Origin: Marsupella aquatica
Taxonomy: Eukaryota > Plantae > Marchantiophyta
Assembly: GCA_973895155.1 (NCBI GenBank)
Contig: OZ316897.1
Location: forward strand, 8,827,832-8,891,831
Length of the DNA: 64,000 bases
Direction of reading: 5' to 3'
Below the pieces are notes generated by a model that did not search any database, was not told the origin of the DNA, and saw nothing but the letters and a program-made list of their open reading frames with translations. How positions within the stretch are numbered: the first letter of the stretch is position 1; each line of letters starts with the position of its first letter. This document shows positions 7,501-38,995 of this stretch, in pieces. The translations under genes were made by a program, and so were the position numbers.

Positions 7501-10500
7501 CTAACGTCGGTAAACACGCCCGTACCCAGGTGAGATGCGGTCGTCATTGAACACATTCAGCTCTGGTGCAAGGAGCTTTGTGTATCGATCGAAGTACAGC
7601 AGCTGCTTCACCAGCAATCCAAACTCTCGAGGGAGCCGCAATCCATAGCTTTCACTTACTCGGACCTGCAGAGATTTACAATACCTCATTCAGAAGGAGG
7701 GTGATATGGCAATTCTGGGCATTGGATGCGACAACTTCCGGCAGCATACCACAAGATAGCATGGCTTTGTCAGTGACATACGTCCCAACCATCGATGGAT
7801 TCCGCTGCCAAAAGTATCAGAGGTTGTGAGAGGGAAGGGGGGTAAAGAGATTTATACCACATCAAGTAGCAGAGCATTGACTTGCTGCTCATCAATGACT
7901 AGGGTGGCGTCCACAGATGAACCATATGGACTTGCTGTTTGAGTCAACAGTACATCTGGGTCCAAGTCCTGCAGCATTTGTGGCCAGAGTTAAACAAAGA
8001 ACTCCATCCCATCACATTACTTATAGCTTCCTGGGCGTCTTAATTCACACCAGCCACGGCAGCTTAAGTTATATCAAGTGCTCTAGCAAAGATCATAGAT
8101 CACTCCCCATCCTAGTCCTTTTGGTTTCACACTACCATACTCTCCTCACCCTTCTGAATTGTGCCACAAATCTATAGCTACACTGAATCATTAGACCTTC
8201 CTAGCGAGCATAACGACCTCTTCATGCCCCAAGTGATTCATCTTATTTACAGAAGGCTCCCATTCAAGAACTGCACTACAGACAACAAAGGTTCGGGTAT
8301 AGCAAAGACTCTTGTATGAGCATCATGTCGAACCACAAACCCGAACTGTACTGAATATCTTCTCTAGGTCAAGTGCGAAGCTGTCCACGTCCACAATCTT
8401 ATCAGTGGCACCCATCTGCACCATTGCTGTAGCCATGGCTCTGTACTGGCCGTCTCCAACTGAAGAGAGAAATGTCTGCATAGCCGCCCAGGTTGCTGGA
8501 GAGATTCGGCCCACAATTCCTGCCAAAATGGATTTTGCATCAATAGTCAAGAACTCAAGCGAAGATTGACCACTGTTCCAAACAGAACTACGAACTGCTG
8601 TGCCCAAATACATATCTGCATTGAAGAAAAGTGCAGAGGTTAATTCAACTTTGCCATACAGAGCAAAACGTCAGCTGGTATGGGAGAAATACAGACAAGC
8701 AGCAGACCTACCAAAATCGATAAATCCAATGCGTCCATCGTTAAGCACAAGCAAGTTGCCAGCATGAACATCCGCATGAAAGCTCTCACAGGCGATCAAA
8801 CTGCCAAACCTGCCAATTCCACCGAAAACAGCTGTGTTGTCCATATCTCTGTCATTTGACTATATCTCAACATTTGCACTTAGACGGTTGCTTCGCTGGA
8901 ATGTAACGAGGAATGTAATCAAAGGGAATGGAGAGAACAGCCAGACGAAAATGTCAATGTTCAAAAGCTTGTAGAGCACTTTTTAGTACACTGGTAAAGA
9001 CCCACAGGCTATTGATTCAACTGATAATTGCCATGCACAGCAAACTCAATCAAGGAGCGCATGGATTGACAGGTACCAAACATTCAGGGCGTTAATCAAT
9101 GTTGCCTCCGGATTTGGCACTATGGAGCGAATCGACTCCAAGTCAGTCAGAGGAACACCAAAGAATCGCTCCATAGTCAGCACACGACGACTGGTACAAT
9201 GTTTGTACACAAATGGAGCAGTTGCCTGTCGGCTTGCCCCAGTCGCCTCAACATAGTTTCGGAATGCCTCAATACTCACTGCTTCCTTCCTGAAGTCCAC
9301 TTCTTCCAGCATTGATGCCCTTAAGTCACCCACTATACCTACCTGCAGCGCAGCTGAGACATTTTATGCTTACTGAAACAGGAATCACAGAGTTTAACAA
9401 CCGAAGAACCTCTCAAAGGTATAGGTAACAAAGGCTTGCCTGTGCTTTTCTGTTAAAACAAAAGGAAATTTCTGAGCTCATACTGATGACGTAATTCATG
9501 GCTGATGCATGAGCTCATACTGATGACGTAATTCATGGCTGATGCATATCAGCACTGACTTGATCAATCTGTCCTTTTCGTAAGACGCCAGTTACCGTAG
9601 TGTCATGTGTAGCTATATTGCATCACTTTCAACAGAGCCCAAAATTTGGTATCAGCTCCAGAGTACAGAGACTAACCAGAGACGTGCGGCTGAGTTGAGG
9701 GTTCAGGAATTCCAATATACGTGCTGTGATGTAAATGAAGTTGAGGTCGACTGTCAATATGTCCTCAACACCTGGTTTGAGAACTTTGATCACTACATCT
9801 TTTCGACTTTCTTTCAGCTTTGCTGCATGTACCTGTACGACAGTACATGAATTTAAACTCTGGGACCTTCTGCAAATTTTAAGAACAGAATCTTAATATT
9901 GAATGGACGGCAGAACATACCTGTGCGACAGAGGCTGATGCAAGAGGTTCTGGATCAATGTATTCGTAAACCTCCTCCAGAGGTCTACCAAGGTCCTCAC
10001 GAATGATAGCCTTAATCCTATCGAAAGGAACAGGTGGAGTTTTGTCGAGGCAGCTTTGGAACTCCTTCACATAGTCGGCCGGAAATAATGTGGGCGCAGA
10101 TGCTATGAACTGACACAAACATCAAGAAACGTCAACCACCAAAGCAGGGTACCACATCTGTCAACTCAGTCCAAATGAGCAGTACAAAGCCTGTCTTTTG
10201 CCTGGGTTTGTTCATACTTGTAGGGAGTATGCACATTGGTCCTATAGTTGAGTATCCTCACCTGACCCAGCTTGATATAGGTAGCTCCCAGTCTTTCAAA
10301 TAGACGGCGAAGTTGTGCAGGGCCAGGAGGGTCCACAGTGAAAGGAGCCCTTGCACTTGAGGAGATTTGTGCTCCCTGCACGATGAGCGAGGTCAGCTAT
10401 TGGGACTCTCAGCGGCCATGATGTCACTTTGGAACAATCAAACTCATTTAATGGAGTACAATCTGGTAAAGTTCGACATCAGACAGCCCTCTTAGACAGG

Positions 10501-12539
10501 TATCGGTGACTTATGTCTGATTTAATAGCGATGAAGATTTGAGATGACAACATGCACTTGGCTGGACTCGAAGCACCCTCAGAAATCCATATCTAGACCA
10601 TTCTTCAAACTGAGAGAACTAAAACCCCTTTCAGTGCTTGTTCTCTAGTGGCTGCCCCGAGGACAAAAGCAAACTGTAAACACAGAATCAACAAGTAGTC
10701 CCGATACTATATTTCTTCCTCCACTATGACGAAGATATGTATCTTAAAACAAGGTATTGCAACAGACAACAATATGGAACAAATAACACAAAACAAGACC
10801 TTCCACAAAACGCTTAAGATAATTGCATCTAAGCGCAGAAATTTACTTGTAATTGCTGCGAGAGATATTCACTCCCAACTGTCAAGACAGCCTCGATACC
10901 TTGAGCAAATCGAGTAGCACCTCTGGGCCCTGTACTAATGGCAGTACGCAGGATTTCTTCCAGTAGCCCATTTAGTTGGGAGATTCTCTCTGCTTAGAGG
11001 ACGGCCAAATCTCTCGTAAATAAAGTTGCCGTCGAAGAAAACTTAGCAAAGACTCCAGCAATGCTAAAATTAAGTATGTGCAACAGAATGTTGCTATGCA
11101 ATGTGTTCTTTCTAGTCAAAATTTGAAATGGTGAAACTGCAAACTACAATAACGAATCACAGCACAACTTGATCTGTTACCTTGATCCAATGGTGGAAGA
11201 CCCTCTGTTCTGGGCCGAGTTGGTGTGGTGGAGACCGCCCTGGCAACCAAGGCTGTTCTTGTTCGGACTACTTGAGAATAACCAAAACGGCCGTGGTGTG
11301 CTATCTTGCTTCCCAGACTTCGCCATCTTTGACCTAACATCCTGTCCTGCTCAGATAGCGAACAACGAGCATAGGAAAGTCAGCAATGAATTGCCAAAAC
11401 AGCTCACAAGTAGTAGGATTCAGCCAGAGAGTTCCTCATTAACCCTCGTATTAAAATTAAGGCACAGTCAGCTGATACTTTTCATCAAACATGTGGAAAT
11501 TACAATCAAACCCAGGAGCTAGAAGGTCAAAATCAAATGACACTCCGTTCTTCCAGATTGGAACCAATCTATTGAAAGTTTGAAGCAGTCATGATTCAGC
11601 AATTGAAAGCGAACCCCGCTGAGATTTGTTTACTTCAAGAAGTCACAGTAGGGTACTGAGAACAGTTTGCCATGACGCAAGCTTGCAAAAACATTTCTGC
11701 GAGGACTTTATCCGACAAATTCGTCACCAAAATAGCTCTATCTTCGAGAGCACTTCTTGTCATGAGTCCAGACAAGGTTACAAACGGAGTCTCGTGTGGA
11801 TACGACCAATTTGTTCACCAATTTGTTCAAAGACCATCATTGCGGTCAGAATTAAGGGAGATTCTGATGTATATTCCCATCCACGGAGATCAGGACTGCC
11901 GTTCGATCGTAGCTAACTTCCAATGCTTCAAGCTTAGGGGTGCATTCATCCACAAACGGACTACCCGGCAGTCATCAGCGAGGCTGGTACTTTGTAAATG
12001 TCAATCTTCAACTATGTTTGAAACAAAGCAAGGCGTTCGGAGATACACCTATTAAAGTAGCCTTTGTTGCCTGCATCGCTTACAACTGCACGAAATTTCT
12101 CCAAATTAAATTTTGTTTTGTCCAATTTTGGCTGAAGCGGAATCTTTCAGCTGCAGCAATGCAGCTCTCCACAACTCGAGAGCTAGGATCCCTCAGTGGG
12201 ACTTTGAACAGTGTATACACACCACTCTTCGGCATTGATAGCCGGGTAAGGAATGATGACCATGTGCAGGGAAATTCGAATTGTGATCCCCATCACCGCA
12301 AGATGAGCTAGAGAAGGGGAAGAGCACAGAAAGCTGCACTACCCTACCGCAAAATTGGAAACAAAAGAATGAACGCTCTCATCCCATGACCCCCACGCGT
12401 CTCACCATCCTCCATGCCAATACTTAAGACGATTCCAGAGACCCAGAATCTCAAAAGGCAGAACAGGAAGTAATTGGGCAACGAAACACATCTGTACCTG
12501 TCGTAGCAGCATCACCGGGGTAGCAATCACGGTTGCCAT
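7501..12539 (-). CDS. ABC1K9: Plastid ABC1/UbiB (AarF) atypical kinase, ABC1K9-like, ~542 aa, 11 exons
   Basis: Exons 12539-12498, 11346-11181, 10989-10847, 10375-10262, 10109-9921, 9832-9677, 9342-9077, 8809-8712, 8519-8341, 7968-7858 and 7665-7501, all GT-AG and in frame. Motifs: LGATYIKLGQ (KxGQ), PLASASVAQVH (A-rich loop), VVIKV, FHADVHAGN, IDFG and a C-terminal LLVKQLLYFDRYTKLLAP. The N-terminus resembles a transit peptide. Confidence 0.9.
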
Positions 12540-12933
12540 GGCCTGAATCATCTCTAACCCAGCTGATACCCTTCCGCTCAGCTCAGTCTCAGAATTGGAA
12601 TGAGAGCTCTGAAGTCTCCCTCAGATAGATGAGACGCTCTATAGGCTTGAGCATGAGGCCCTTCTTCTTCAGATACTCAGTTCGGTATAATCTGCCCGAA
12701 AATCGGCAATCCTTCTCCCAATTCGTCCTAGACCCCACATTTCCTAAGAGAAAGAAGGAGGCCGTTTGGAGCACTACCGTGGACGTAATTTGAGACCCTC
12801 CATGTTTCTTGTGGACATGAGTTCACTCATTCAGCTGCTTTCTTTTGGCTCACTCTACCCGCCCACAAACTATTCAGTGACGTCGATAAAATGGCAGTCG
12901 TTTTCTTCATGTTTGCTTGCGACACAAACGAGT
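8743..12933. repeat. Left arm of a ~4.2-kb inverted duplication
   Basis: Reverse complement of 14261-18504. Mirror ORF pairs include 9046-9333(-)/17914-18201(+), 9879-10118(-)/17143-17382(+) and 11116-11340(-)/15908-16132(+). Confidence 0.95.
9474..9547. repeat. 37-bp intronic tandem duplication (x2), mirrored at ~17714-17787
   Basis: gagctcatactgatgacgtaattcatggctgatgcat occurs twice in tandem. Confidence 0.9.
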
Positions 12934-13260
12934 TGGCTTTACAAGAACTTGGGGCAGCATTGCCTTTTTCTCTAAGTGTGAGATGCATTTCCTTTTTCTC
13001 TAAGTGGGGTGGGTATTGAATAATAGACGCATGACAAGAAAGCCCTGATGATGGATGGATAGAATAAGGGTGGCTTTACAGGAACTTGGGGCAGCATTGC
13101 CTTTTTCTCTAAGTGTGAGATGCATTTCCTTTTTCTCTAAGTGGGGTGGGTATTGAATAATAGACGCATGACAAGAAAGCCCTAATGATGGATGGATAGA
13201 ATAAGGGTGGCTTTACAGGAACTTGGGGGCAACATTTCCTTTTTCTCTAAGTGTGAGGTG
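12934..13260. repeat. 137-bp tandem repeat, ~2.4 copies
   Basis: Units start tggctttaca at 12934, 13071 and 13208. Confidence 0.9.
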
Positions 13261-13647
13261 CAATCCTAACCATTCATATGTGGGAGTAGGCCACATTTCA
13301 CTTCACATGAATTTGGGGACATAATGCAATCCACATGAATTTGGGGACATAATGCAATCCTAACCATTCATATGTGGGAATAGGCCACATTTTGGTTCAC
13401 TATTTCCCATTCATCTTTGCCCCCATCTGTCTTTTCTGTTTGCACCATCGATTTTAGTTATGCCCTTATTAGAATCACTGTCTACAAGTATCCCTATCTT
13501 TTGTATGCACTCTCACTCTCAATTAAGTCCCTCGAGAGTCAGGCTCTAGAGACTTCACTGTAGACACTAGGCCCAAAGAATAGCTTTTGATTGAGATTAT
13601 ATATTTATAGATTAGATGTAAAATAGATTAGATGGATGGAATCTTAA

Positions 13648-13754
13648 TATACATTTGCAATCCAAAGAGGGAACCTATGGTCTAGAGTGAAGTATACATT
13701 TGCAATCCAAAGAGGGAACCTATGGTCTAGAGTGAAGTCTTCACTCTAGACCAT
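13648..13754. repeat. 45-bp tandem duplication ending in a perfect 33-bp palindrome
   Basis: tatacatttgcaatccaaagagggaacctatggtctagagtgaag x2, with atggtctagagtgaag-t-cttcactctagaccat at 13722-13754. Confidence 0.9.
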
Positions 13755-13995
13755 GACTCTGGGACATAACTGAAATTGAGAGGCAAGTGGAAAACAGGGA
13801 TTGGGGCCATCTATCTATGTATATAATCACAATCAAAAGCTACTTTTTAGGGCCTCTGGTTTGGAGTGAAAGTTGAGAGTGTGAGTGGAAAACAGGGATT
13901 GGAGGCATCTAACTATGTAATACCGATCCAAAGCTACTCTTCAGGGTCTATTGTCTAGAGTGAAGCTTTAATTTGGACTGTGTCTCTTGGGGCGT

Positions 13996-14108
13996 AACCG
14001 AAGTTGGGGTGCAAAAGAAAAATGAGGAAACCAAAGTTGGGGTGCAAAAGAAAAATGAGGAAACCAAAGTTGGGGTGCAAAAGAAAAATGAGGAAACCAA
14101 AGTTGGGG
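13996..14108. repeat. 33-bp minisatellite, ~3.4 copies
   Basis: Repeated aaccaaagttggggtgcaaaagaaaaatgagga. It explains the repetitive ORFs at 13948-14429. Confidence 0.9.
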
Positions 14109-14260
14109 GCGTGTAGGAATGAAACGCAGGAAGACCAAAGAGCAAAAGAAACCGAGGGTCCCCCAGATGAATCTCGAACCTTCGATAGAGTTGTCCTGAT
14201 GCTCCCAAAGAAGCTTGTCACGTTTGTTCAGCCGTTCCACAAGCTTACAAACACGAGCAT

Positions 14261-17200
14261 ACTCGTTTGTGTCGCAAAGCAAACATGAAGAAGAGGACTG
14301 CCATTTTATCGACGTCACTGAATAGTTTGTGGGCGGGTAGAGTGAGCCAAAAGAAAGCAGCTGAATGAGTGAACTCATGTCCACAAGAAACATGGAGGGT
14401 CTCAAATTACGTCCACGGTAGTGCTCCAAACGGCCTCCTTCTTTCTCTCAGGAAATGTGGGGTCTAGGACGAATTGGGAGAAGGATTGCCGATTTTCGGG
14501 CAGATTATACCGAACCGAAGATCTGAAGAAGCATACGGGATAGGATAGTAAAAGCTGTAGCATACCATGCGTTGAAGTTTCACAAATGCACTGCTCAAGC
14601 CTACAGAGCGTCTCATCTTTCTGAGGGAGACTTCAGAGCTCTCATTCCAATTCTGAGACTGAGCTGAGCGGAAGGGTATCAGCTGGGTTAGAGATGATTC
14701 AGGCCATGGCAACCGTGATTGCTACCCCGGTGATGCTGCTACGACAGGTACAGATGTGTTTCGTTGCCCAATTGCTTCCTGTTCTGACTTTTGAGATTCT
14801 GGGTCTCTGGAATCGTCTTCAGTATTGGCCTGGAGGATGGTGAGACGCGTGGCGGTCATGGGATCAGAGCGTTCATTCTTTTGTTTCCAATTTTGCGGTA
14901 GGGTAGTGCTGCTTTCTCTGCTGTTCCCCTTCTCTAGCTCATCTTGCGGTGGTGGACATCACAATTCGAATTTCCCTGCACATGGTCATCATTCCTTACC
15001 CGGCTATCAATGCCGAAGAATGATGCGTATACACTGTCCGGAGTCCCACTGAGGGATCCTAGCCCACGAGTTGTGGAGAGCTGCATTGCTGCAGCTGAAG
15101 GATTCCGCTTCAGACAAAATTGGACAAGATTTAAATTTTAATTGAAGAAGTTTCGTGCAATTGTAAGCAATTCAGGCAACAAAGGCTACTTCAATAGGTG
15201 TATCTCCGAACACCTTGCTTTGTTTCAAATATAGTTGAAGATTGTCATATACAAAGTACCAGCCTCGCAGATGACTGCCGGGTAGTCCGTTTGTGGATGA
15301 ATGCACCCCTAACCTTGAAGCATTGGAAGTTTCAGCTACGATCGAACGGTAGTCCTGATCTCCGTGGATGGGAATTTACATCAGAATCTCCCTTAATTCT
15401 GACCGCAATGAAGGTCTTTGAACAAATTGGTGAACAAATTGGTCGTATCCACCCGAGTCTCCGTTTGTAACCTTGTCTGGACTCATGACAAGAAGTGCTC
15501 TCGAAGATAGAGCTATTTTGGTGACGAATTTGTCGGATAAAGTCCTCGCAGAAATGTTTTTGCAAGCTTGCGTCAGGGCAAACGTTCTCAGTACCCTACT
15601 GTGACTTCTTGAAGTAAACAAATCTCAGCAGGGTTCGCTTTCAATTGCTGAATCATGACTGCTTCAAACTTTCAATAGATTGGTTCCAATCTGGAAGAAC
15701 GGAGTGTCATTTGAGTTTGACCTTCTTGCTCCTGGGTTTGATTGTAAACTCTACATGTTTGATGAAAAAGTCTCTGCTGACTGTGCCTTAATTTTAACAC
15801 TGGAGTTAATGAGGAACTCTCCGGCTGAGTCCTACTACTTGTGAGCTGTTTTGGCAATTCATCTCTGACTTTTCTATGCTCGCTGTTCGCTATCTGAGCA
15901 GGACAGGATGTTAGGTCTAAGATGGCGAAGTCTGGGAAACAAGATATCACACCATGGCCGTTTTGGTTATTCTCAAGTAGTCCGAACAAGAACAGCCTTG
16001 GCTGCCAGGGCGGTCTCCACCACACCAACTCGGCCCAGAACGGAGGGCCTTCCACCATTGGATCAAGGTAACAGATCAAGTTGTGCTGTGATTCGTTACT
16101 GTAGTTTGGAGTTTCACCATTTCAAATTTTAACTAGAAACAACATATTGCATAGCAACATTGTGTTGCACATACTTAATTTAAGCATTGCTGGAGTCTTT
16201 GCTACGTTTTCTTCGACGGCAACTTTATTTACGAGAGATTTGGCCGTCCTCTAAGCAGAGAGAATCTCCCAACTAAATGGGCTACTGGAAGAAATCCTGC
16301 GTACTGCCATAAGTACAGGGCCCAGAGGTGCTACTCGATTTGCTCAAGGTATCGAGGCCGTTTTGACAGTTGGGAGTGAATATCTCTCGCAGCAATTACA
16401 AGTAAATTTCTGCCCTTAGATGCAATTAAATTAAGCGTTTTGTGGAAGGTCTTGTTTTGTGTTATTTGCTCCATATTGTTGTCTGTTGCAACACCTTGTT
16501 TTGGTGTTGCAAACAAGGTGTTGCAACATCTTCGTCATACTGGAGGAAGAAATGTAGTATCGGGACTACTTGTTGATTCTGTTTTACAATTTGCTTTTGT
16601 CCTCGGGGCAGCCAATAGAGAACAAGCACTGAAAGGGGTTTTAGTTCTCTCAATTTGAAGAATGGTCTAGATATGGATTTCTGAGGTGCTTCGAGTCCAG
16701 CCAAGTGCATGTTGTCATTTCAAATCTTCATCGCTATTAAATCAAACATAAGTCACCGATACCTTTCTAAGTGGGCTGTCTGCGTCGAACTTTACCAGAT
16801 TGTACTCCATTAAATGAGTTTGATTGTTCCAAAGTGACATCATGGCCGCTGAGAGTCCCAATAGCTGACCTCGCTCATCGTGCAGGGAGCACAAATCTCC
16901 TTAAGTGCAAGGGCTCCTTTCACTTTGGACCCTCCTGGCCCTGCACAACTTCGCCGCCTATTTGAAAGACTGGGAGCTACCTATATCAAGCTGGGTCAGG
17001 TGAGGATACCCAACTATAGGACCAATGTGCATACTCCCTACAAGTATGAACAAACCCATGCAAAAGACAGGCTTTATACTGCTCATTTGGACTGAGTTGA
17101 CAGATGTGGTACCCTGCTTTGGTGGTTGACGTTTCTTGATGTTTGTGTCAGTTCATAGCATCTGCGCCCACATTATTTCCGGCCGACTATGTGAAGGAGT

Positions 17201-18504
17201 TCCAAAGCTGCCTCGACAAAACTCCACCTGTTCCTTTCGATAGGATTAAGGCTATCATTCGTGAGGACCTTGGTAGACCTCTGGAGGAGGTTTACGAATA
17301 CATTGATCCAGAACCTCTTGCATCAGCCTCTGTCGCACAGGTATGTTCTGCCGTCCATTCAATATTAAGATTCTGTTCTTAAAATTTGCAGAAGGTCCCA
17401 GAGTTTAAATTCATGTACCGTCGTACAGGTACATGCAGCAAAGCTGAAAGAAAGTCGAAAAGATGTAGTGATCAAAGTTCTCAAACCAGGTGTTGAGGAC
17501 ATATTGACAGTCGACCTCAACTTCATTTACATCACAGCACGTATATTGGAATTCCTGAACCCTCAACTCAGCCGCACGTCTCTGGTTAGTCTCTGTACTC
17601 TGGAGCTGATACCAATTTTTGGGCTCTGTTGAAAGTGATGCAATATAGCTACACATGACACTACGGTAACTGGCGTCTTACGAAAAGGACAGATTGATCA
17701 AGTCAGTGCTGATATGCATCAGCCATGAATTACGTCATCAGTATGAGCTCATGCATCAGCCATGAATTACGTCATCAGTATGAGCTCAGAAATTTCCTTT
17801 TGTTTTAACAGAAAAGCACAGGCAAGCCTTTGTTACCTATACCTTTGAGAGGTTCTTCGTGATTCCTGTTTCAGTAAGCATAAAATGTCTCAGCTGCACT
17901 GCAGGTAGGTATAGTGGGTGACTTAAGGGCATCAATGCTGGAAGAAGTGGACTTCAGAAAGGAAGCAGTGAGTATTGAGGCATTCCGAAACTATGTTGAG
18001 GCGACTGGGGCAAGCCGACAGGCAACTGCTCCATTTGTGTACAAACATTGTACCAGTCGTCGGGTGCTGACCATGGAGCGATTCTTTGGTGTTCCTCTGA
18101 CTGACTTGGAGTCAATTCGCTCCATAGTGCCAAATCCCGAGGCAACATTGATTAACGCCCTGAATGTTTGGTACCTGTCAATCCATGCGCTCCTTGATTG
18201 AGTTTGCTGTGCATGGCAATTATCAGTTGAATCAATAGCCTGTGGGTCTTTACCAGTGTACTAAATAGCACTCTAGAAGCTTTTGAACATTGACATTTTC
18301 GTCTGGCTGTTCTCTCCATTCCCTTTGATTACATTCCTCGTTACATTCCAGCGAAGCTACCGTCTAAGTGCAAATGTTGAGATATAGTCAAATGACAGAG
18401 ATATGGACAACACAGCTGTTTTCGGTGGAATTGGCAGGTTTGGCAGTTTGATCGCCTGTGAGAGCTTTCATGCGGATGTTCATGCTGGCAACTTGCTTGT
18501 GCTT
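14261..18504. repeat. Right arm of the inverted duplication (copy of the ABC1K9 upstream region through exon 8)
   Basis: Begins actcgtttgtgtc, the reverse complement of 12921-12933. Identity stops after ...aacttgcttgtgctt at 18504. Confidence 0.95.
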
Positions 18505-21122
18505 CACGAAGGAAGGAAGGAACCGGCATTTGTCCCTCTGGACAGACAAACGGATGGAAGGAAGGAAGGAACTATTGTTCCTGTAGAGCCCTCACTAGCC
18601 TCTCCTACAGGGCATCGATCCGGGTTCATGTATCGCCCCTTCGTCGATTTTGCAGTTGAGGAGTTGTCTAGACACCCTGATGTCTCACCAGTACTTTTAA
18701 AGGTCTCTCTTTGATGTTCTTTACTTAAAGAAATTATTAAGTTGTCGACTCCTGTTGGTCTTCTAGTCATCTCCGGTATAGTTCAGGCTGGGTGGGGTTT
18801 TCAAATTACGAAAGAAATGACAGAGATTGTTGATGGACTTGGTGTTTGAAAGAGAGTACTCTCCTTTAGTGGCACTTTTGGCTGGATTTTACATGGTGAC
18901 CCTAGCATGTAAGATTTTCTGCAAGATCAGAAGAATTTCATCTGGCTTCAGCTATACGGTTGTGAGCTTGGCCTCGGGATTTTTTATTCTTTCTGCATTT
19001 CTGCTCTGCAGGAGGAATTCAGGAATATGACTGCACAAGGTGTCAATGCTGCTAATATTGATAACAAGGCATTTACTTCATCAAAGATCCGGATGTTTAG
19101 GATCGCTTCAATTGACACCGGTCCTATGCAGGTTCTTTCCTCATCCACTTCCCTCGATGTCATAATTTTGTTATTCTGGTGGTCTTCATGGCCTGAATAG
19201 AATTTTTCCACAATGCATAAACTTCAGGAAGGCTCTTATTTGTGTGACTGGAGGATTAAGCCCTATAGGACCATCTGTTGGCTTTCCAATCACGGAAGCC
19301 TCCGAGAAGTATTTGTTTTTCTCTTTGTGGCGACCTTGCTCCGAGGGGTTGACGTTAAGTGAGACACAGGATTTCGCTGCTTGGACGTACCCTTTTTAGT
19401 TTGCGCACGGCCAAGTCATATCACATGATATCTGGAGGTTTTTAGCCACGGACAACTGACCTATTGATTTTAGAAGTAAGAGCCGTTCTTTTTTCTTTGC
19501 ATGCAGGTGCTCAATGTTGCTGGATTTCCAAGACCGGACTACGATCTTCCCATCTTCTGTGCTGATTTTTTCTCGGTACCGAAAATGAATATCATTGTTT
19601 TGTATGACACTAAACTTCTGCCAACCTACTGCACCCCTCTTCTCTTAAATGGTCCTTCTTGCCTCTATGCCTTGACATAGACTTAGATTTCTCTGGAGAT
19701 GTATTCTTCCAGAACTCATGTGCTGCAACTATTCTGGGTCATACAGGGACCTCAATCCACTTTACAACACAGACAGTGACAAGGGTTACAAGGAGCGGTT
19801 CTACTCTGACCTCTTACCTCTTGCCAACAAATACATAAAGGTAAGCGGTGCAAGGGAGTCATGGGCAGAATCGTGTATTCTTTTGAAGTTTTACTCAGCG
19901 TCCTTCACAAATTCTGGAGACTTCGGAGGTTTGCATGTTGCGTTGAAAGTTGCGTTGAAGCTGAGGTTCACAACATGCCAGCAGCCAGTGCTGATATTGG
20001 TGTGGTTGTTTGTGTACAAAATTTTCAACGAATGTTTTACATCATGTTGATCTTCGTTATTTTGCAGTTTTTCCCTTGGGGTGATAAGCTCACTCCCGAG
20101 TCACTGCGATTTTTCTCTCCTCTAGTTTTGTGGACTAAACCGCCAACAGATGACGTTGGCAAATTTTTATACCCTGCTTTCCAAGACTACCTTAAGGTAC
20201 GTGCTTCTTGAAAACTTGGTGGAAATAATTGCTTCATCCATCCTGACAAGTCAGATTCACTCTCGGAGAAGCATAGATCATCTTTCCTACAAGCCTCTCA
20301 TTAAATTTTTGCGCGTGCAGGCCTGGCTGAATATGGTCGACTCAGCTCAGCCGGCCGTTGATCCCGTAGCGATTGCCAAGAATCAAGAAGCCCAGCACCG
20401 TTATATTTCCTGGCGAACCACCAAGGTTAATGTTCTTTTCAGAATCGCAGGAGACAGTGGTTCTCAGAAATTGAACACGAGCGCTTACTGCTTTTGGACT
20501 GCCTTCCATATTATGCTGGTCTGAAATTTGTGGCAAGACACGATTGTGGGTGAAAACGGGCTAACGTGCAATTTGGTATACTTGTGGATTGGTTTAGGAT
20601 CCAGGGCGGCCAGTACTTACAAAGCTGTTTGGGGAGCAGTTGGCTGAGGTAAGCTTTGTTTAGCATGTTGTTCATTTTCAAGATAGTAAATCATGGAGGG
20701 ATGTTTTGTTAAATTCTTTAGCTCATGTGCAACTCTCGTAAATGCTACATATCGACTTCAGGTTGAGACATTTTTAAACTATGACAGAAATTACAAGGAG
20801 GGAGGTTTAATTTGTGATTTTTTCGTATGAGAAGCCCTTCAATCCTGAGTGATGTTAATCTGTACAGGATTTCAATCTTGATTAATTGAGACTCGCCCTC
20901 TCTTCCTGAGAATTAAATGATGCGAGTGCTGGGTCTGGTTGGGTTTTGCAGAGTTATATCAAGGAATTCCTGTTCAATGGCCACAGCACCTTGGGAACAA
21001 AATCCTTCCTGGATTACTTCCCTGAATATAGAGGTGAGGACGGGAGCATGTACAAACAACGGAGTATGACTGGCAAGTCATTTGAGGCAAGACCGTGGGA
21101 CAAAGATGGCAATTTTCTCTAA
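14706..21122 (+). CDS. Chimeric gene: ABC1K9 N-terminal part fused in frame to HY2; predicted 701 aa, 15 exons
   Basis: Exons 14706-14747, 15902-16067, 16259-16401, 16886-16999, 17152-17340, 17429-17584, 17905-18170, 18438-18702 (fusion exon), 19012-19131, 19507-19601, 19747-19840, 20068-20196, 20321-20425, 20598-20648 and 20952-21122. Total 2106 nt, all GT-AG, with no internal stop. Transcription as a single mRNA is inferred. Confidence 0.7.
18505..21122 (+). CDS. HY2: Phytochromobilin:ferredoxin oxidoreductase (ferredoxin-dependent bilin reductase) moiety, lacking its native start and transit peptide
   Basis: MYRPFVDFAVEEL...AFTSSKIRMFR...PDYDLPIFCADFF...IVLDLNPL...FPWGDKLTPESLRFFSPLVLWT...EAQHRYISWRTTKDPG...EFLFNG...GTKSFLDYFPEY...GKSFEARPWD. 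The C-terminal LDYFPEY/RPWD extension is typical of the HY2 lineage. Confidence 0.92.
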
Positions 21123-21882
21123 ACTAATATCAGTGTACCCGCATCAATGGTCATCTCAAGATTCAGAGAGAGTTCGTAGTGTCACCAGAAGTCTATTGCT
21201 AAGAGCTCCTTGGTCAGAGACTGTGGTACTAAGTTTTGTTAGCCTGTAGTTGATTAGGATGTACATACTGGAATATGAACAGAGGACGGCAATATCAGCA
21301 ATGTTCCTGGATTAGTAATGTAACTCATCTCTTATGCTGGTGAGAGCGGATGTACAGGTAGACATAGACCAGGTTGTATTCAGAGCTGGTTGAGATGGAG
21401 AACCCACATCGGTGGGAAGCAACATTTTTCATTTCTAGATAAATCTTCTCATGCGCTAGAGTGATTTCAATGTTTTGAAAGATGTAGGTTGTCTGTCTAA
21501 GAAGGCCCGATTTCTTTTGACTTTTTTGTCCTGTTGTTGACAGCTAATACATTTTTCTAGCCTTCCTCTAGTCATTGTTTCAGGACCGAACGAGAATGCA
21601 AGCGAGGGTACTGGTTGTATAGATCTGTCATATATGTGAATATCTTGTCACAACCTCTAAAGAAGGTATTCTTTGTCTCTGCTAATGATTATTTTGGAAG
21701 TGTTTTAATCAAAAAATTATTAGTGGAACGGTTTAGGGTCCACTGGTATTCAAACCCCCAAACTTAAGATTTTATAGGAAAGAATCACTACCGGCTTCCC
21801 CCACGTTATCAAAACATGTGTTGGAGCATGAACAAAACGAGGAAATGTTGGGAGCAGAGGTCTCCGGTTTGAGTTCGGTAAG

Positions 21883-22210
21883 CACAATTTATCATTTAAC
21901 ATTCACACATATCCATGTGGAGAACCAAAGAAACTATTTTAACAGTGGGAAAAAAGCCACCCGGAGAGAAGGAGTTTCACGGCCGAAAAAGATGTGCACA
22001 ATTTATCTTTCAACTCTCGCACAACCCAAGGATCAGGAAAAGAAATAAATTTATCATTTAACATTCACACAATTCATGTGGAGTACCAAAGAAACTATTT
22101 CACAGTGGGAAAGAAGCCATCAGGAGATAAGGAGTTTCAAGGCCGAAATAGATGTGCACAATTTATCTTTCAACCTTCGCACAACCCAAGGATCAGGAAA
22201 GAAATAAGTC
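21883..22210. repeat. ~160-bp diverged tandem duplication downstream of HY2
   Basis: aatttatcatttaacattcacac...ggatcaggaaa(a)gaaataa occurs twice here but once in the paralogous flank at ~53890-54050. Confidence 0.75.
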
Positions 22211-23732
22211 GCCGGGAAGGTCGAGCGGCCAGGCAAAACGAGTGTAGGTGCTTGGTAGAAAGCCGCAACAAGAGTGTGGGTGTGGGGTAGAAAGGCCCGA
22301 AGCTCACTACTCAGTTTGAAATTGTATAGTCCATAGAGTAGACACGAGCAACTACTAGTATAATTACAAAGGAGACTGAAAGAAGTTACAGAGTTTCATA
22401 TTTCATATGAGAACTCATGATTACTCTGGATTATCTGCAAGTTTGTAATGCACGGTTTAGCATTGGCCTGTGGGTCGTACTTTTGAATATGCTTTAGAAT
22501 GTTTAGAAGTTGAGGTGAGTAATTCAAGTAGTTGTCAATACCATCCAATATAATCACTTCCATCTTCGCGCTGGCCTGTGAGTTAAACTCGCCTGTGAGT
22601 TTTACTTTTGCAATTGCTTGATTAGTTGAGGGTTAGTGGGTGGTAATACCGTCCAACGCACTCACTTTCATCCTAGACATGACAATAGCATCAATGCAAG
22701 CATTTCAATTCCAAAGTCATAACAATAGTATCCAATGCAAACACTTCAATTCCACTGTTGCCAAAGCAGTCTTCGATGCACTTCCTCTGATGTGTAATTG
22801 CTTCACACCCTGAAAATTGCCTGCACAAACACTTGCAGGTGGCACACAGGTGATGCAATGATAAGCCCTTTAACGTGAGCTGACAGCGTGTTTAACAAAA
22901 TGTGTGGATAGCCACGAAAATAGCTGCAACTAAAAACTACAGGTACACAACCAACATTCCAGCTTGATGGAACTACCTACTTTAAGTTCCACTAAATCCA
23001 CCCGTAAAGGTTATAGAGGGCAGACAAAGTGAGCAAATTCGATTTACAGTGCAGACTAACTCCGATTCTCATATCCCTACATTTATGTACTGTGATCACA
23101 ATGCCAGAGTCCCGATCAACCAACTGTTATACAGAGCACACTTTCCAAGGTCACAATCCGACCATGGATCCTACTCACACTCTGGCTAATCAATCAATGA
23201 TTCAGTTCCCTTCCGTGCTGCTCGCGTCTTGCCTTTCGTCGTGTCGAAAACTCCATCTCCCAGCGTTGCGTTCGACGTCCCAAGCCCTCTTTAGACACTG
23301 TGCAAACTGCGCAAAGACCAGTCAGCATCATCGAGTTTTCACCATAGTTTCATCTCAAGCGAACCAGTAATCTAATATATGAAACAATTCACTCATGCTT
23401 AACGTCACAATGTATTCTACTTGATCCAATCAGGAAATGAGTGGTTGAGGTCCGATGGCCAAATTGTGAAAATGATAGATTTCATCTCATTTAACTTCGA
23501 AAGCAATATCCGGTTCAGGCGCATTAGTAATCTAGTGTAATACAGCTCACGCAAGGTGCAACGACGTAACAAGTTCAATCAGGAAAAGAGTAGTTGAGGT
23601 TAATCACGTTGTGCAAATGATATGCGGACATCGTTTCTTTCTTGAAACACAATATGTTGATCACATATTCACGTACCGGGGCACGCATAGTCGTCAGTCT
23701 GCTCCTCCCATTCAAGCTAATGTAGGATGCGC

Positions 23733-26700
23733 CTAACCGACTGTTTGTGTACAATCATCACCTTGATCCTGATATAGCTCTTTTTCCACGGAAAAACATC
23801 CATCTTCTACTGTGTACCATATCCGCGAACCTCGTCCAATTCTGCTCGGTGCATTTGGTGTCATCAACCATGGTGGCAATGAATTGACAAGATTACGACA
23901 AAAAATGAGCTTTAGTCTTTGCAGTGACGGTAAACTCTTGATGCCGCCTGGAATGCTTGCAACAGAATCAAGGAGAATTTTCAGGTGACGAAGATCCTTC
24001 AAGTCTCCCAAGGAGTTCAGTGTCATGTCCTCAGCCACACGTATCTTCACAAATTGAAGTTTCTTGAGTTGCCGTAAAGATTCGGGCAAAGTGTCCAATG
24101 TGCAATCCATTTTAAGCTCCTCCAAGGCAGCGAGTTGTCCGAAGGTGTCTGGCAAGGTGCGTAATTTGTCGCAGTAGATTAATTCAAGCTGGTTCAAAGA
24201 GGACAGTCCCCCGAATGACTCAGGCAAGGTACTCAAGTTCTCGCAGTTATAAAATGCAAGATGGTTCAAGGAGGACAGTCCCCCGAACGACTCAGGCAAG
24301 GTGCGCAAGTTCTCACAATTCCCAAATCGAAGATGGTTCAAGGAGGACAGTCCCCCGAATGACTCAGGCAAGGTACTCAAGTTCTCGCACTTATAAAATG
24401 CAAGATGGTTCAAGGAGGACAGTCCCCCGAACGACTCAGGCAAGGTGCGCAAGTTCTCGCACACATAAAATGCAAGATGGTTCGAGGAGGACAGTCCCCC
24501 GAACGACTCAGGCAAGGTGCGCAAGTTCTCGCACTCATAAAATTCAAGATGGTTCAAGGAGGACAGTCCCCCGAATGACTCAGGCAAGGTACACAAGTTC
24601 TCGCACTCATTGAATTCAAGATGGTTCAAGGAGGACAGTCCCCCGAATGACTCAGGCAAGGTACGCAAGTTCACGCACGCATAAAATTTAAGATGGTTCA
24701 AGGAGGACAGTCCCCCGAATGAGTCAGGCAAGGTATGCAAGTTCACGCACTCATTGAATTCAAGATGGTTCAAGGAGGACAGTCCCCCGAACGACTCAGG
24801 CAAGGTGCGCAAGTTCTCGCACTCATAAAATTCAAGATGGTTCAAGGAGGACAGTCCCCCGAATGACTCAGGCAAGGTACACAAGTTCTCGCACTCATTG
24901 AATTCAAGATGGTTCAAGGAGGACAGTCCCCCGAACGACTCAGGCAAGGTGCGCAAGTTCTCGCACTCATAAAATTCAAGATGGTTCAAGGAGGACAGTC
25001 CCCCGAATGACTCAGGCAAGGTACACAAGTTCTCGCACTCATTGAATTCAAGATGGTTCAAGGAGGACAGTCCCCCGAATGACTCAGGCAAGGTGCGCAA
25101 GTTCTCACAATTCCGAAATCGAAGATGGTTCAAGGAGGACAGTCCCCCGAATGACTCAGGCAAGGTACTCAAGTTCTCGCACTTAAAAAATTCAAGATAG
25201 TTCAAGGAGGACAGTCCCCCGAATGACTCAGGCAAGGTACGCAAGTTCACGCACGCATAAAATTTAAGATGGTTCAAGGAGGACAGTCCCCCGAATGACT
25301 CAGGCAAGGTACTCAAGTTCTCGCACTCATGAAATTCAAGATCGTTCAAGGAGGACAGTCCCCCGAAGGACTCGGGCAGAGAGGACAATTTCGGACAATC
25401 ATAGAATTCAAGATGGTTCAAGGAGGACAGTCCCCCGAATGACTCAGGCAAGGTACTCAAGTTCTCGCACCTATAAAATTCAAGATGGTTCAAGGAGGAC
25501 AGTCCCCCGAATGACTCAGGCAAGGTACTCAAGTTCTCGCACTCATAAAATTGAAGATGGTTCAAGGTGGACAGTCCCCCGAAGGACTCCGGCAGAGAAT
25601 ACAATTTCGGAGATGATGCTATTACAAGGTGCTGTAAGGAGGACAGTTGCCCAATAGAACTCGGAAGGTGCTCCAAACCTTCTAACTCCAAGTAGGCAAG
25701 ATGACTTTGGAGGGAAGGGTCAAAAAGATTTTGACCAACACATTTGAGTAAAACAAGCTCAGTTGGGAAGGATCCATCTTCCTGAGCTCCATCCATCCTC
25801 ATTGGGACGTTAACTTCCAAGAAACGGAGATTCTTCAGTTTGAGAAGAGCACAGGTTGGAATATTGATCAACAGCTCATCATCGTCATCATCGTCATCAT
25901 CATCACTTGCACTCTCGTCATCATCATCATCATCACTTGCACTCTTGTGCTCCAACCGCAAGGCATACAATTCCTGTAAATAGAAACCACAACTGAGAAT
26001 CAAGAAATCACCTGATACTATTTTATCCCTATCATTGCAAATAAGTAGTTAGACCAGGAAAAATCTGACCTCATCCAGGGTACTCCAGGACCAGGTCCAA
26101 TCCTTCAAATATGCAAGCACAAGCATGGATGTTTGTAGTCTGCTAGTGTGACTGACCTGGAGCTTACCTTTCCATTTAATAGACTTGGAGTTTGTAACAG
26201 CTCCAGACCCTTCTCTCCATCCCAGACCCTCCACTTCCTGGAGTAGCTGGGCTCACACGCAATCTTCCTTCCAAGACTTTGTAGTTGTTCATGTACCTTG
26301 ATTTGCTCATCATCTTTCACGTCATAAACTAGAGACATGTCCACCAAAGTCCCCCAAAGTATCCTTTCAATAGGTGTTTTATAAGCAACCCTCAATACTC
26401 CCAGGACTTTACCCAAAGTCCACTGCCACGACGTGCTGAAAAATGTTGTTACATCCAAAAACATCTGTTGCTCGATTGGTCCCAGACCCTCATAACTAGG
26501 CCTTAGCTTAGCCCAAAGCCTCTCATTCATGTCTTTCACATCCATTGCTTCATCCAAGGCAAGCAAAGTTTGCTTCCAGACATCACAGTTCGATTTCGCT
26601 TTCAGGTACTTCCCAAGAACTTCCAGTGTTAGTGGCAAGCCATCACATTTTCTCACAATGGTTTTCATGATGCTTCCCAACTCTGGCACTGGTACTCCTT

Positions 26701-28739
26701 GACCTGGAAATGCAAAACTTTGGAAAAGTACCATGGCAGCATCGTCTTTGAGGTATGGAACCTCATAGATGTCCCCCCAATGACGTACAAGATTTTGGTC
26801 TCGCGATGTCATAATGAAACGGCTATGTGACCCTGTAAGTTGACCTAATTCTGATAAAATCATGGCATCACGATCAGTAGAGATATCATCTAAACCAAGG
26901 AGCAACTTCTTCCCTTTCAAGTTCTTCCAATCCTCTTCACTTGAGACCTTTCTCCCATGACGATACATCTGACTCCACACTTCTTGTTTCACAGCTTTCT
27001 CATCCCCTTTGATTAGCTTCACATTAAGCACAAAACAAGTATACTCAAATTGTTGGCTCATGCTGTTGAAAATTATCTTGGCAAGGGTGCTTTTGCCCAC
27101 ACCTCCCATTCCCACCAGGCCTAATATTGGAATATTGAACAGCTTCTCGATTATTTCTTCCTTTGGACCATCAATACCAATAATTGAGTCAGGAACAAAT
27201 TGGAAATTCTCAGGAAGTACTGACGTGCCTTGTGCCTGCATTTTAAGAAACAATAGCCAACTGTCAATACCAATTGTATTTTGGGCTTCAAAATACAATC
27301 ATGAAACAGCCTACTTTCCAACTCAATTCAAGATGGCCGCTTGGGCAAAAGGGATGAAAACATCTTACCTTCACGTCACCAACTATTCTGGAGAGAAACG
27401 TCTCTAGCGTATAGAAGCTTCTTTTGGTCTTTGTCATTGGCTTACATATTGTGAAGTGGTCAACTCCATCAACAATATTGAAATTATCTCGTCTTGAAGA
27501 TGCCTCAGGGACTATGAAAACTTCACCTAAGTTTCCCTGCCCAAAACCAACCAACAAATGCAATTGATGAGACCACAATTATGTGAGCCTCTATACTGTG
27601 GCAAAATACTTGAATCCAAATTTGAAGTAATATAAGAGTACTCTTATCATTGTCACTGTCACACATTACTGTTACTACAAATCACTCCATACACTAACGT
27701 TCATTAAACCTCAAGAAGACATGATTGTGAGATTTCGAATTGCAGAGGGACAGCATCTACCAATGTCTCACTTAAACAAAGCACACCACACGGAAGGTAG
27801 TGAGTAGATCTATACCAATCTTGTTGGCATGCTCTCTCCAACTCCCTCCATCTGCAACTTGGGATACATTCTGCATACCCTGTCGAACTTGTGATTCAGC
27901 CTTGCTGCTTCTTTACTCAGAATTTTGAAGTAATCCCGTAGGGGACCGCCACAAAGATCTACTGCTTCCTCTGCAATTGAGCTGCCGTGATGTGGAGTGC
28001 CATAAAAAAATATTCCATTTAGGTTGTTAAGAAAGGTCTGGAGCTTCTCCTTGGTTGGGCCTTTGGTCATACCGAGCAATTCATGGGCTTGGCAGAATAC
28101 TTGCTTAATGACAATGCCCCCAACAGAATGACCAACTAAGATCACCGGACAACCCGGCACTTGCCCAATGTCTGCTTGGAGTAGATCCGAGATGAAGTTT
28201 TCTGCAATGTTGTAGATATCGAAAACACTGTTACGGACACTTTTGCCTACACGCCCATCATATGAAACATACAACACGTGACTGCCTGGGAATTCCTCAA
28301 CCAACCACTCTTGAGGCCACATGCATTTCCCATCCCTGCTTTCCCACGTCCACAAATGTACATTTGTGAAGTTCTGGAATTGCAGCCCATGGAAGAACAA
28401 AAGCTGCATGCTGGCAATGCCCGGCGGTCTGTCAAGCTCATAAAAGGATTCATTTACCTGAGACAAAGGGTCCAAGTAATCAATACTCCCACACAATCTT
28501 GTCATTCAATCCCTCGTTTACATTCAAAGCACAAAATCCCACAGAAGCCAAGACCAGACTAGATCAGGGTCTGGACTGTGCATTACCTCTCGAGCACCTG
28601 CTGTGATTCGCGAAGAAGTAGAAGCTATAGATGTTGTGGTCAATGACGCACGTAGCATGTAGCTCAAGCGTGTGACCCATCGGCTTTTGGAGTTCGCAGG
28701 ATCGTAATAGTTGGCAAGGCCGCGTAGAATGGAAGCCAT
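23733..28739 (-). CDS. NLR-A: alpha/beta-hydrolase-NB-ARC-LRR immune receptor, ~1434 aa, 20 LRR cassettes
   Basis: Exons 28739-28587, 28457-27816, 27536-27369, 27235-26168, 26102-26070 (micro-exon) and 25973-23733, all phase 0. Hydrolase motifs FFHGLQ, WPQEWL, GHSVGG, FYGTPHHGS, DHFTICKP. NB-ARC motifs GMGGVGKS, LLLGLDD, SRFIMTSRD, CDGLPLTL, VHEQL. LRR units LxxLPESFGGLSSLNHLxFxxCxN. Confidence 0.9.
24165..25604 (-). repeat. Coding tandem array of 20 x 72-bp LRR units (NLR-A)
   Basis: Core caagatggttcaaggaggacagtcccccgaa(t/c)gactcaggcaaggt recurs every 72 bp. Confidence 0.97.
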
Positions 28740-29089
28740 GCAGGTAACCGAGTAATTTCGGAGGCTTGCTCTTGATACCGATCAGAGCATGTGCTCGAGA
28801 AGAAACCTGCGCAGCATGAAGAAGGGTTGAGCAGGCTTGTCTTCTCCGGTCCAAAAGGCAGTATGGTCGACCTTAGATGGTGGCCTAAAAGGTGGGACAA
28901 GTTCAATACTTCAAGTGCACATCCGTGAGTAATTCAGTAGTCCCTAGGCGCAAATAGAAATAAAGTACTCTTATCATCTAAATAAAGTACTCTTATCATC
29001 TAATGCGTAGCGTTGCCTGAAACGAGACATAATTTGCTACTAGTGCGTTGGACTAGAAGTTGTCTCATGCTGAAACACGAGACATGACA

Positions 29090-29790
29090 GGTTACACTGC
29101 AAGCCAGGTGCAAATTGCTTTAATGCTCCGTAACATTTAATTCTATCTATTGATATCAAAAGCCTGGAGCACATTTACACGTTCTCCAAACCATTTGATC
29201 AAGACTGTCCACTTAGAGGTCGGAGTTGGAGACCAGAGAAGAGAAACAAAAGCTTCGTGTTTGATGTCCAGAACGAAATCCACTTATGTAGATCTGCACG
29301 AGGGGCAGGAAAGTGAGCATTCAAGCGACATGGACGCTTTGAAGGTATTCAGGTCGTCATTTCGGTTGGTGAATGGAAGTGAGCGAGTCAAAACATTCCA
29401 ACAACCACATGCCATAAGAGAAAATTCAAGGATTTCAAGGGTACACTGCAAGCCAGGCGCAAAGTGCTTTACTGCTCCGTAAGATTTAATTCTATCTATT
29501 GATATCAAAGGCCTGGAGCACATTCACACGTTTTCCAAATCAATCGATCAATACTGTCCACTTAGAGGTAGCAGTTGGAGACCAGAGAAGAGCAACAAAA
29601 GCTTCGTGTTTCATCTCCAGGAACATAAGTCCACTAATTCTAGATCTGGACGAAGGGCAGGAAAGTGAGCATTCAAGCGATATGGAGGCTTTGGAGGTAT
29701 GCAGGTCGTTATACTGGTTGGTGAATGGAGTGAGCGAGTCAAAACATTCCAACAACCACATGCCATAAGAGAAAATTCAAGGATTTCGCC
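29090..29790. repeat. ~350-bp tandem duplication upstream of NLR-A
   Basis: Units begin gg(t/g)tacactgcaagccagg at ~29090 and ~29440; compare ORFs 29150 and 29499. Confidence 0.85.
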
Positions 29791-38000: not shown

Positions 38001-38995
38001 CAGCGTCTACCAATGTCTCACTTAAACAAAGATTGCTTGCACACCACACGGAAGGTAGTGAGTAGATTTGTACCAATCTTGTTGGCATGCTCTCTCCAAC
38101 TCCCTCAATCTGCAACTTCGGATACATTCCGCATACCCTGTCGAACTTGTGATTCAGCCTTGCTGCTTCTGTACTCAAAATTTTGAAGTAATCCCGTAGG
38201 GGACCGCCACAAAGATCTACTGCTTCCTCTGCAATTGAGCTGCCGTGATGTGGAGTGCCATAGAAAAATATTCCATTTAGGTTGTTAAGAAAGGTCTGGA
38301 GCTTCTCCTTGTTTGGGCCTTTGGCCATACCCAGCATTTCATGGGCTTGGCAGAATACTTGCTTAATGACAATGCCCCCAACAGAATGACCAACTAAGAT
38401 CACCGGACAGCCCGGCACTTGTCCAATATCTGCTTGGAGTAGATCCGAGATGAAGTTTTCAGCAATGTTGTAGATGTCAAAAACACTGTTACAAAAACTT
38501 TTGCCTACACGCCCATCATATGAAACATACAACACGTGACTGCCTGGGAATTTTCCAACCAACCACTCTTGAGGCCACATGCATTTCCCATCCCCGCTTT
38601 CCCACGTCGACAAATGTACATTTGTGAAGTTCTGGAATTGCAGCCCATGGAAGAACAAAAGCTGCATGCTGGCGTTGCCCGGCGGTCTGTCAAGCTCACA
38701 AAAGGATTCATTTACCTGAGACAAAAGGGTCCAAGTAATCAATACTCCCACACAATCTTGTCATTCAATCCCTCGTTTACATTCAAAGCACAAAATCCCA
38801 CAGACGCCAAGACCAGACTAGATCAGGGTCTGCACCGTGGACCTCTCGAGCACCTGCTGTCATTCGCGAAGAAGTAGAAGCTATAGATGTTGTGGTCACT
38901 GACGCACGTAGCATGTAGCTCAAGCGTGTGACCCATCGGCTTTTGGAGTTCGCAGGATCGTAATAGTTGGCAAGGCCGCGTAGAATGGAAGCCAT
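35040..38995 (-). pseudogene. NLR-B: hydrolase-NB-ARC-LRR with a frameshifted, contracted LRR (6 cassettes); pseudogene or truncated receptor
   Basis: Exons 38995-38843, 38715-38074, 37787-37620 and 37487-36420 are intact. The LRR exon from 36227 has +5 nt at ~35550 giving TGA at 35547, plus a further 1-nt loss near 35150. The micro-exon donor is GT>CT (36323). Confidence 0.8.
35473..35909 (-). repeat. 6 x 72-bp LRR units plus 5 extra nt (NLR-B)
   Basis: Span is 437 = 6x72+5. Confidence 0.9.

Follow-up and report, generated by a model that had tools for sequence, protein, structure and literature searches.

How can a bilin reductase gene continue to be expressed and targeted once its own promoter, start codon and leader have apparently gone? 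HY2, the phytochromobilin:ferredoxin oxidoreductase that makes the phytochrome chromophore, is normally encoded by a single, stand-alone gene, on which phytochrome signalling depends. In a stretch of 64,000 nucleotides from the leafy liverwort Marsupella aquatica (assembly GCA_973895155.1, contig OZ316897.1, positions 8,827,832 to 8,891,831 of the forward strand; the window, whose own numbering is used throughout), HY2 has been joined to the duplicated 5' part of a neighbouring ABC1 kinase gene. This chimeric locus is real, and a real, probably expressed chimeric gene is its most likely interpretation. The gene model consists of 15 exons.

14706-14747, plus strand: exon 1, kinase-derived
15902-16067, plus strand: exon 2, kinase-derived, presequence exon
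16259-16401, plus strand: exon 3, kinase-derived
16886-16999, plus strand: exon 4, kinase-derived
17152-17340, plus strand: exon 5, kinase-derived
17429-17584, plus strand: exon 6, kinase-derived
17905-18170, plus strand: exon 7, kinase-derived
18438-18702, plus strand: exon 8, junction exon (kinase, filler, HY2)
19012-19131, plus strand: exon 9, HY2-derived
19507-19601, plus strand: exon 10, HY2-derived
19747-19840, plus strand: exon 11, HY2-derived
20068-20196, plus strand: exon 12, HY2-derived
20321-20425, plus strand: exon 13, HY2-derived
20598-20648, plus strand: exon 14, HY2-derived
20952-21122, plus strand: exon 15, HY2-derived, with the stop codon

The frame was verified exon by exon and the exons were searched singly against the libraries. 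From 14706 to 21122 every border is AG/GT, the phases are compatible and internal stops are absent, such that the chimeric frame counts 701 codons with the stop at 21122; the in-frame fusion of 701 amino acids with all splice sites kept, as claimed in a preliminary description made from the letters alone, is hereby confirmed. An alternative in-frame ATG is located at 14694, four codons 5' of the modelled start. By origin, the coding sequence is composed of four segments.

14706 to 18504, plus strand: kinase-derived coding part, 381 codons over 8 exons, with a presequence-like N-terminus
18505 to 18513, plus strand: breakpoint zone with microhomology of a few bases between parent and chimera, from the alignment of copy and parent
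18514 to 18598, plus strand: dispersed-repeat filler that keeps the frame open over about 28-30 codons, with GGAA-type simple repeats on its flanks
18599 to 21122, plus strand: HY2-derived part, the last 104 nucleotides of native exon 1, seven more exons and the stop

The kinase part originates from an inverted duplication, which has been recognized by comparison of the window with itself.

7504 to 12539, minus strand: parental ABC1 (UbiB-type) kinase gene, apparently complete, exon 1 at 12539-12498
8734 to 12933, minus strand: parental arm of the inverted duplication, 94.9% identity to 14261-18513
12934 to 14260, no strand: spacer between the arms, with short tandem repeats
14261 to 18513, plus strand: duplicated arm, with upstream sequence including the 5' untranslated region, kinase exons 1-7 and the first 67-76 nucleotides of exon 8

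The 4.25 kb at 14261-18513 are an inverted copy of 12933-8734 (94.9% identity over 4271 alignment columns), with the two arms standing head to head across the 1.3-kb spacer. The minus-strand copy is the parent; its exon 8 (8809-8710) extends beyond the breakpoint, takes in the IDFG motif and closes with a GT donor, and additional C-terminal exons, present in the parent only, follow down to about 7504. The duplication had been described as young, which is supported by a divergence of the copies of about 1-5%. Since about 445 bp of sequence 5' of the ATG have been duplicated, which outside one indel are at least 97% identical to the parent, the kinase promoter has probably come along. The indel, 50 bp with a replaced segment, is found in the copied leader 5' of the ATG (about 14532-14590 versus 12664 in the parent). 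The spacer itself contains tandem duplications at 12934-14108 (137 bp in 2.4 copies, 28 bp in 2, 45 bp in 2 and 33 bp in 3.4). A perfect 37-bp tandem duplication is equally present in kinase intron 6 of the copy (17714-17788), where contigs of two public DNA sequencing runs, X3 and X5, jump 69 bp at 17713/17783; this repeat is thus variable among the sampled lineages.

What has been retained of the kinase are the motifs KLGQ, the Ala-rich loop ASASVAQ, VVIKV with the catalytic Lys and HADVHAGN, with exons 5-7 covering positions 4-163 of the 244 positions of the ABC1 profile (PF03109) in a Pfam search. A complete kinase core is not present; the copy stops 5 codons before the parental IDFG, and the translations and the profile both agree with the preliminary description, which had listed KxGQ, the Ala-rich loop, the catalytic Lys and HAD as kept and DFG and the C-lobe as lost. 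Because DFG and C-lobe are missing, the kinase stub is predicted to be inactive and cannot, on this reading of its motifs, be catalytic as a kinase or an ATPase. Its N-terminus is rich in Arg, Ser and Thr with few acidic residues. With respect to the ABC1 subfamily, exon-length queries of the protein libraries matched only unnamed ABC1 fragments, and ABC1K9, as named in the preliminary description, is a putative assignment.

The HY2 part, on the other hand, starts its domain with the YRPFVDFAV motif and retains all of the bilin reductase from there to the C-terminus. Its nearest sequence is HY2 of the liverwort Calypogeia fissa, to which it is collinear, with 79% nucleotide identity including introns, about 89% amino acid identity and matching intron positions. 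In the Pfam search, HY2 exons fall on positions 64-93, 126-167 and 168-202 of the 228 positions of Fe_bilin_red (PF05996), and exons align to positions 98-127, 129-159 and 204-238 of the tomato HY2 chain 6KMD; the claim of a complete HY2 catalytic domain is supported. Affiliation with the HY2 lineage, as opposed to PcyA, PebA/B or PUBS, follows from similarity and collinearity, not from a tree, with liverwort HY2 and named phytochromobilin synthases being nearest. The Asp of the FCAD motif aligns with PcyA Asp105 (2G18 alignment), which is the position of Asp122 in KflaHY2, while the distal Asp, equivalent to SlHY2 Asp263, is situated in a KDPG motif as the next residue after the one aligned to 6KMD position 238. 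Both the Asp of the PcyA Asp105 type and the distal Asp are essential in KflaHY2 (bioRxiv 10.1101/2022.08.22.504806). At the position of SlHY2 Asp123 and PcyA His88 an Asn is found, as in KflaHY2, Ceratodon and other liverwort HY2, and the HY2 proteins of Calypogeia and Riccia possess the same active-site residues as the chimera. The Asn/Asp pair equally occurs in the Ceratodon enzyme, which produces phytochromobilin (bioRxiv 10.1101/2022.08.22.504806). The enzyme part thus looks fully competent as far as its residues can tell, with phytochromobilin and phycocyanobilin as product alike compatible with the sequence.

The 5' end of HY2 is a different matter. Homology to Calypogeia HY2 begins exactly at 18599, corresponding to position 10317 of the Calypogeia locus (L001) and to about codon 104 of the 396-amino acid protein, and the first 316 nucleotides of native HY2 exon 1 are found nowhere in the 64-kb window, in agreement with the earlier observation that no HY2 start exon exists there. 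With homology starting only there, HY2 is considered to have lost its original 5' end: judged by this comparison, start codon, about 103 leader codons with the transit peptide, and promoter are missing from the window, and the HY2 part is without a plastid transit peptide of its own at the N-terminus.

How kinase and HY2 meet differs in one aspect from the preliminary description. The passage from kinase to HY2 within one exon is upheld, but the kinase does not pass directly into HY2, as a stretch of 85-94 bp after the breakpoint is repeat-derived and HY2-derived sequence starts at 18599. At 18514-18598 a depth spike is seen in four public runs (X1, X3, X5 and X8), and many contigs of these runs match the filler only and leave it for unrelated sequence on either side, before 18545-18560 on the left and behind 18596-18599 on the right; the filler is therefore part of a repeat dispersed in the genome. 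A self-search recovered no other copy of the filler within the window, nor does 18514-18598 have homology to Calypogeia HY2. The linker as a remnant of the HY2 leader was rejected, with the start of DNA homology and the repeat borders both at 18596-18599.

Short-read graphs break at repeats such as the dispersed one beside this joint, and two loci might have been misjoined by the assembly; contigs of X1 and X3 terminate at 18504-18551. However, a 376-nucleotide contig from X5, a run of a different study and organism label that is 0.3-1% diverged from the window, spans 18396-18771 through breakpoint, filler and HY2 exon with a single difference, reaching 108 nucleotides to the left and 258 nucleotides to the right of the breakpoint. 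The preliminary description had let its claim stand or fall with support for the junction by raw reads, which is borne out by this contig. As the arms are in addition about 5% apart and hence are not a single locus that the assembly has collapsed or doubled, a misjoin is hardly credible. The chimeric junction is common to at least two sampled lineages, that is two organism labels 0.3-1% apart. The single difference concerns position 18505, which is C (His) in the window and A (Asn) in the X5 contig of organism B and in the parent; because the X5 contig holds the parental A, the His is, by this polarity, a later change in the lineage of the window. In X1, a second contig with the C of the window at 18505 is present beside a parental one.

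The comparison with Calypogeia fissa also points to the ancestral layout. There, an intact HY2 is followed at a distance of 8.4 kb by an ABC1 gene in the same orientation; the start region of this ABC1 gene (557 amino acids, L001) aligns to both kinase copies of the window, including the 5' region of the parental kinase. Because HY2 adjoins the orthologous ABC1 kinase in Calypogeia, the two parent genes are best regarded as neighbours already before the event, and the chimera as the outcome of a local rearrangement. The adjacency is not general to liverworts, as the HY2 loci of Marchantia paleacea and Riccia have no adjoining ABC1 gene. A TP_methylase gene adjoins HY2 in Calypogeia fissa (L001 1-2023) and Riccia fluitans (L003 13707-16960) and is absent from the window; the adjacency of TP_methylase and HY2 looks old in liverworts from these two loci.

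Has selection acted on the chimera? The substitution check of the duplicated kinase exons proposed in the preliminary description resulted in 18 differences to the parent, 12 synonymous and 6 non-synonymous (98.4% exon identity), a modest constraint; four of the 6 non-synonymous changes reside in the presequence exon 2, the other two near the start of exon 4. With a neutral copy and a constrained parent, the probability of 6 or fewer non-synonymous changes among 18 is 0.01-0.04. No indel separates copy and parent in the exons, with 11 events in the non-coding part. For the HY2 part in comparison to Calypogeia, the ratio of non-synonymous to synonymous substitution rates (dN/dS) is 0.13 at a dS of 0.36. 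The window offers a further comparison with a second, truncated HY2 copy.

52094 to 53132, plus strand: second, dead HY2 copy, limited to the 3' half (exons 12-15), 97% identical to 20082-21500

This fragment has two frameshifts in its exons, one from a deletion and one from an insertion of 1 bp. With the 3' exons polarised by Calypogeia, the chimera has acquired 2 substitutions, one of them synonymous, and the dead fragment 4 besides the 2 frameshifts. By these measures the HY2 part is under constraint, and the signs of selection on the chimera appear modest.

With these observations taken together, the following course of events is favoured. In a local inverted duplication, a plastid-type ABC1 kinase gene would have given rise to a copy of its promoter region and its exons 1-8, and the copied kinase part would have been joined via about 85 bp of repeat filler to HY2 exon 1 at about codon 104. 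The duplicated kinase promoter would then drive a read-through transcript, spliced at known working sites into one in-frame fusion mRNA for a protein of about 701 amino acids, which would consist of the N-terminal targeting peptide of the kinase, a catalytically dead kinase stub and the complete HY2 domain. The kinase presequence would take over from the transit peptide that HY2 has lost, and biliverdin would continue to be reduced for phytochrome by the HY2 domain. To this explanation as a whole, from the duplication to an expressed, kinase-targeted, working HY2 fusion, a probability of about 0.5 is assigned. Its parts differ in strength. No stop or terminator is encountered between the kinase and HY2 parts, and the production of a fusion mRNA is likely; that the plant uses the fusion protein as its working HY2 has slightly less than an even chance. 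Tentative at most, and rather unlikely, is the furthest extension, according to which the fusion would be the only phytochromobilin synthase of the species, imported by the ABC1 transit peptide, tethered to a dead N-lobe and under the kinase promoter, with the stub perhaps placing bilin synthesis at plastoglobules or thylakoid membranes. In Arabidopsis, ABC1K9 is a core plastoglobule protein (PMC4915526).

Several observations weigh against this course of events. No chimeric transcript has been found in X8, the only RNA-like run covered, which derives from a related species with exons about 5% diverged; kinase and HY2 are represented there by separate transcripts. Its kinase contig runs beyond 18509 into parental exon 8 and exon 9, and its HY2 contig of 1246 nucleotides begins near 18632. 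Judged by divergence, the X8 species probably predates the duplication, and its spliced contigs use every kinase and HY2 joint of the model (exon 1/2, 3/4, 4/5, 5/6, 6/7 and 7/8, and all seven HY2 introns), which for its part confirms the splice sites and speaks for the favoured course. The indel in the copied leader brings two short upstream open reading frames (ATG at 14567 and 14586), which are absent from the parent and might lower translation of the chimera, and a kinase stub severed in mid-domain may misfold. Furthermore, the arms differ by about 5% at the 5' end but by about 1% close to the junction, a gradient that is seen in both introns and exons and is suggestive of gene conversion from the parent; this process could mimic constraint in only 18 differences. 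Equally, no annotated fusion of ABC1 and Fe_bilin_red is present in the protein libraries, which are without proteins of the source organism. The junction exon recovered from a set of 5.8 billion proteins only short ABC1 fragments, none of which crosses the joint, and the last HY2 exon searched against 1.84 billion representatives gave nothing above 69% identity and no kinase-HY2 fusion, its longer matches (440-509 amino acids) being over-extended or repetitive models with Fe_bilin_red only. Among the matches to Riccia HY2 (242-770 amino acids) none has both ABC1 and Fe_bilin_red, the kinase exon 7 query led to fragments only, all with the parental continuation, the ESM Atlas resolved the kinase at family level only, and two metagenome scans, with the junction and with the conserved HY2 N-terminal motif, gave no match.

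Two other interpretations of the intact locus draw on the same observations. HY2 might be made separately, from an internal start within either the repeat fragment or what was once kinase intron 7, with translation from Met 18628 or, if the intron is retained, from the alternative in-frame Met 18403, and the kinase exons would be an untranslated or separately translated relic. Promoters are often present in repeat and transposon fragments, Calypogeia HY2 shares Met 18628 and the X8 HY2 contig starts near 18632, though contig ends do not mark transcript starts. Such a product would, however, be without a transit peptide, whereas biliverdin and ferredoxin are plastidial, and the stretch from Met 18403 to 18628 is rich in acidic residues, unlike a transit peptide; as the synonymous bias and the indel-free kinase exons are also left unexplained, separate production of HY2 is quite unlikely. 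On the other hand, the chimera might be a silent or decaying by-product of rearrangement, with the chromophore coming from another bilin reductase such as an older HY2 paralogue or a moss-like PUBS-type enzyme. The region is unstable, with four copies of a nucleotide-binding leucine-rich repeat block and the dead HY2 3' fragment, and in a young duplication, with about 9 substitutions expected in the exons of the copy, an intact frame is weak evidence. The HY2 5' half (18714-19966) is represented by one contig each in X1, X3 and X5, with no mixed positions and about single-copy depth, and no second copy of this half, and hence of exons 9-11, was recovered from these three DNA runs among contigs of at least 90% identity; such contigs may conceal a collapsed copy of identical sequence or a paralogue of HY2 below 90% identity, which counts against the favoured course of events. 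Against a silent by-product speak this missing second copy, the slower change of the HY2 exons of the chimera than of the dead fragment, the deficit of non-synonymous changes in the kinase part, which argues against drift, and the junction common to two organism labels 0.3-1% apart, so that this interpretation is considered unlikely. An expressed fusion that has taken over targeting and promoter from the kinase is still preferred as the simplest interpretation.

The surroundings of the chimera are dominated by nucleotide-binding leucine-rich repeat (NLR) genes, the HY2 of the chimera standing at the edge of an unstable NLR cluster. Four tandem block copies, 81-96% identical and about 7-10 kb, have been delineated.

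22048-29436, minus strand: NLR block copy
33306-39682, minus strand: NLR block copy
44780-49300, minus strand: NLR block copy
53890-60655, minus strand: NLR block copy

Each block contains an alpha/beta-hydrolase, an NB-ARC and a leucine-rich repeat (LRR) open reading frame, which we take to be the hydrolase-NBS-LRR type of NLR typical of liverworts. At 24151-25594, with equivalents in the other blocks, a 72-bp tandem array of 20 units with 87% identity lies inside a 756-amino acid LRR open reading frame; the array corresponds to 24-residue LRR units, which expand and contract among the block copies. On its left, at 52094, the dead HY2 fragment adjoins sequence that matches 27067-27904, the NB-ARC/hydrolase portion of one NLR block; the fragment has therefore moved with NLR block duplication.

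The weight of the finding hinges on expression and on the fusion being the sole HY2. The locus would represent a natural case in which promoter and transit peptide of HY2 have been exchanged in one step for those of a neighbour, together with a large dead stub. If the fusion works, it constitutes a natural experiment on plastid import and on the tolerance of a bilin reductase to N-terminal additions, and informs on how targeting peptides are borrowed and how essential genes survive rearrangement next to unstable NLR clusters. Otherwise, the chromophore must come from another enzyme, which would itself be notable.

In relation to known systems, the chimera resembles members of the HY2 family of ferredoxin-dependent bilin reductases, such as Calypogeia fissa HY2 and tomato HY2 (6KMD/6KME), in its catalytic domain, introns, the Asn and Asp pair of the bryophyte and streptophyte type and the distal Asp, but has swapped about 103 native N-terminal codons and the promoter for 381 kinase codons and about 30 repeat codons. 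With plastid ABC1/UbiB kinases (ABC1K, PF03109) it shares the presequence-like region, KxGQ, the Ala-rich loop, the catalytic Lys and HxDxHxGN, but is cut directly after the catalytic loop. Genes that are chimeric or have borrowed a presequence include jingwei of Drosophila and rps14 of grasses, which uses the sdh2 presequence. As in these duplication-fusion genes, a duplicated 5' part gives promoter, start and presequence, and both parents can be identified nearby. The recipient is here, however, a normally single-copy enzyme of photoreceptor biogenesis without its own 5' end, and, beyond a presequence alone, the chimera carries a dead enzyme stub of 320 residues.

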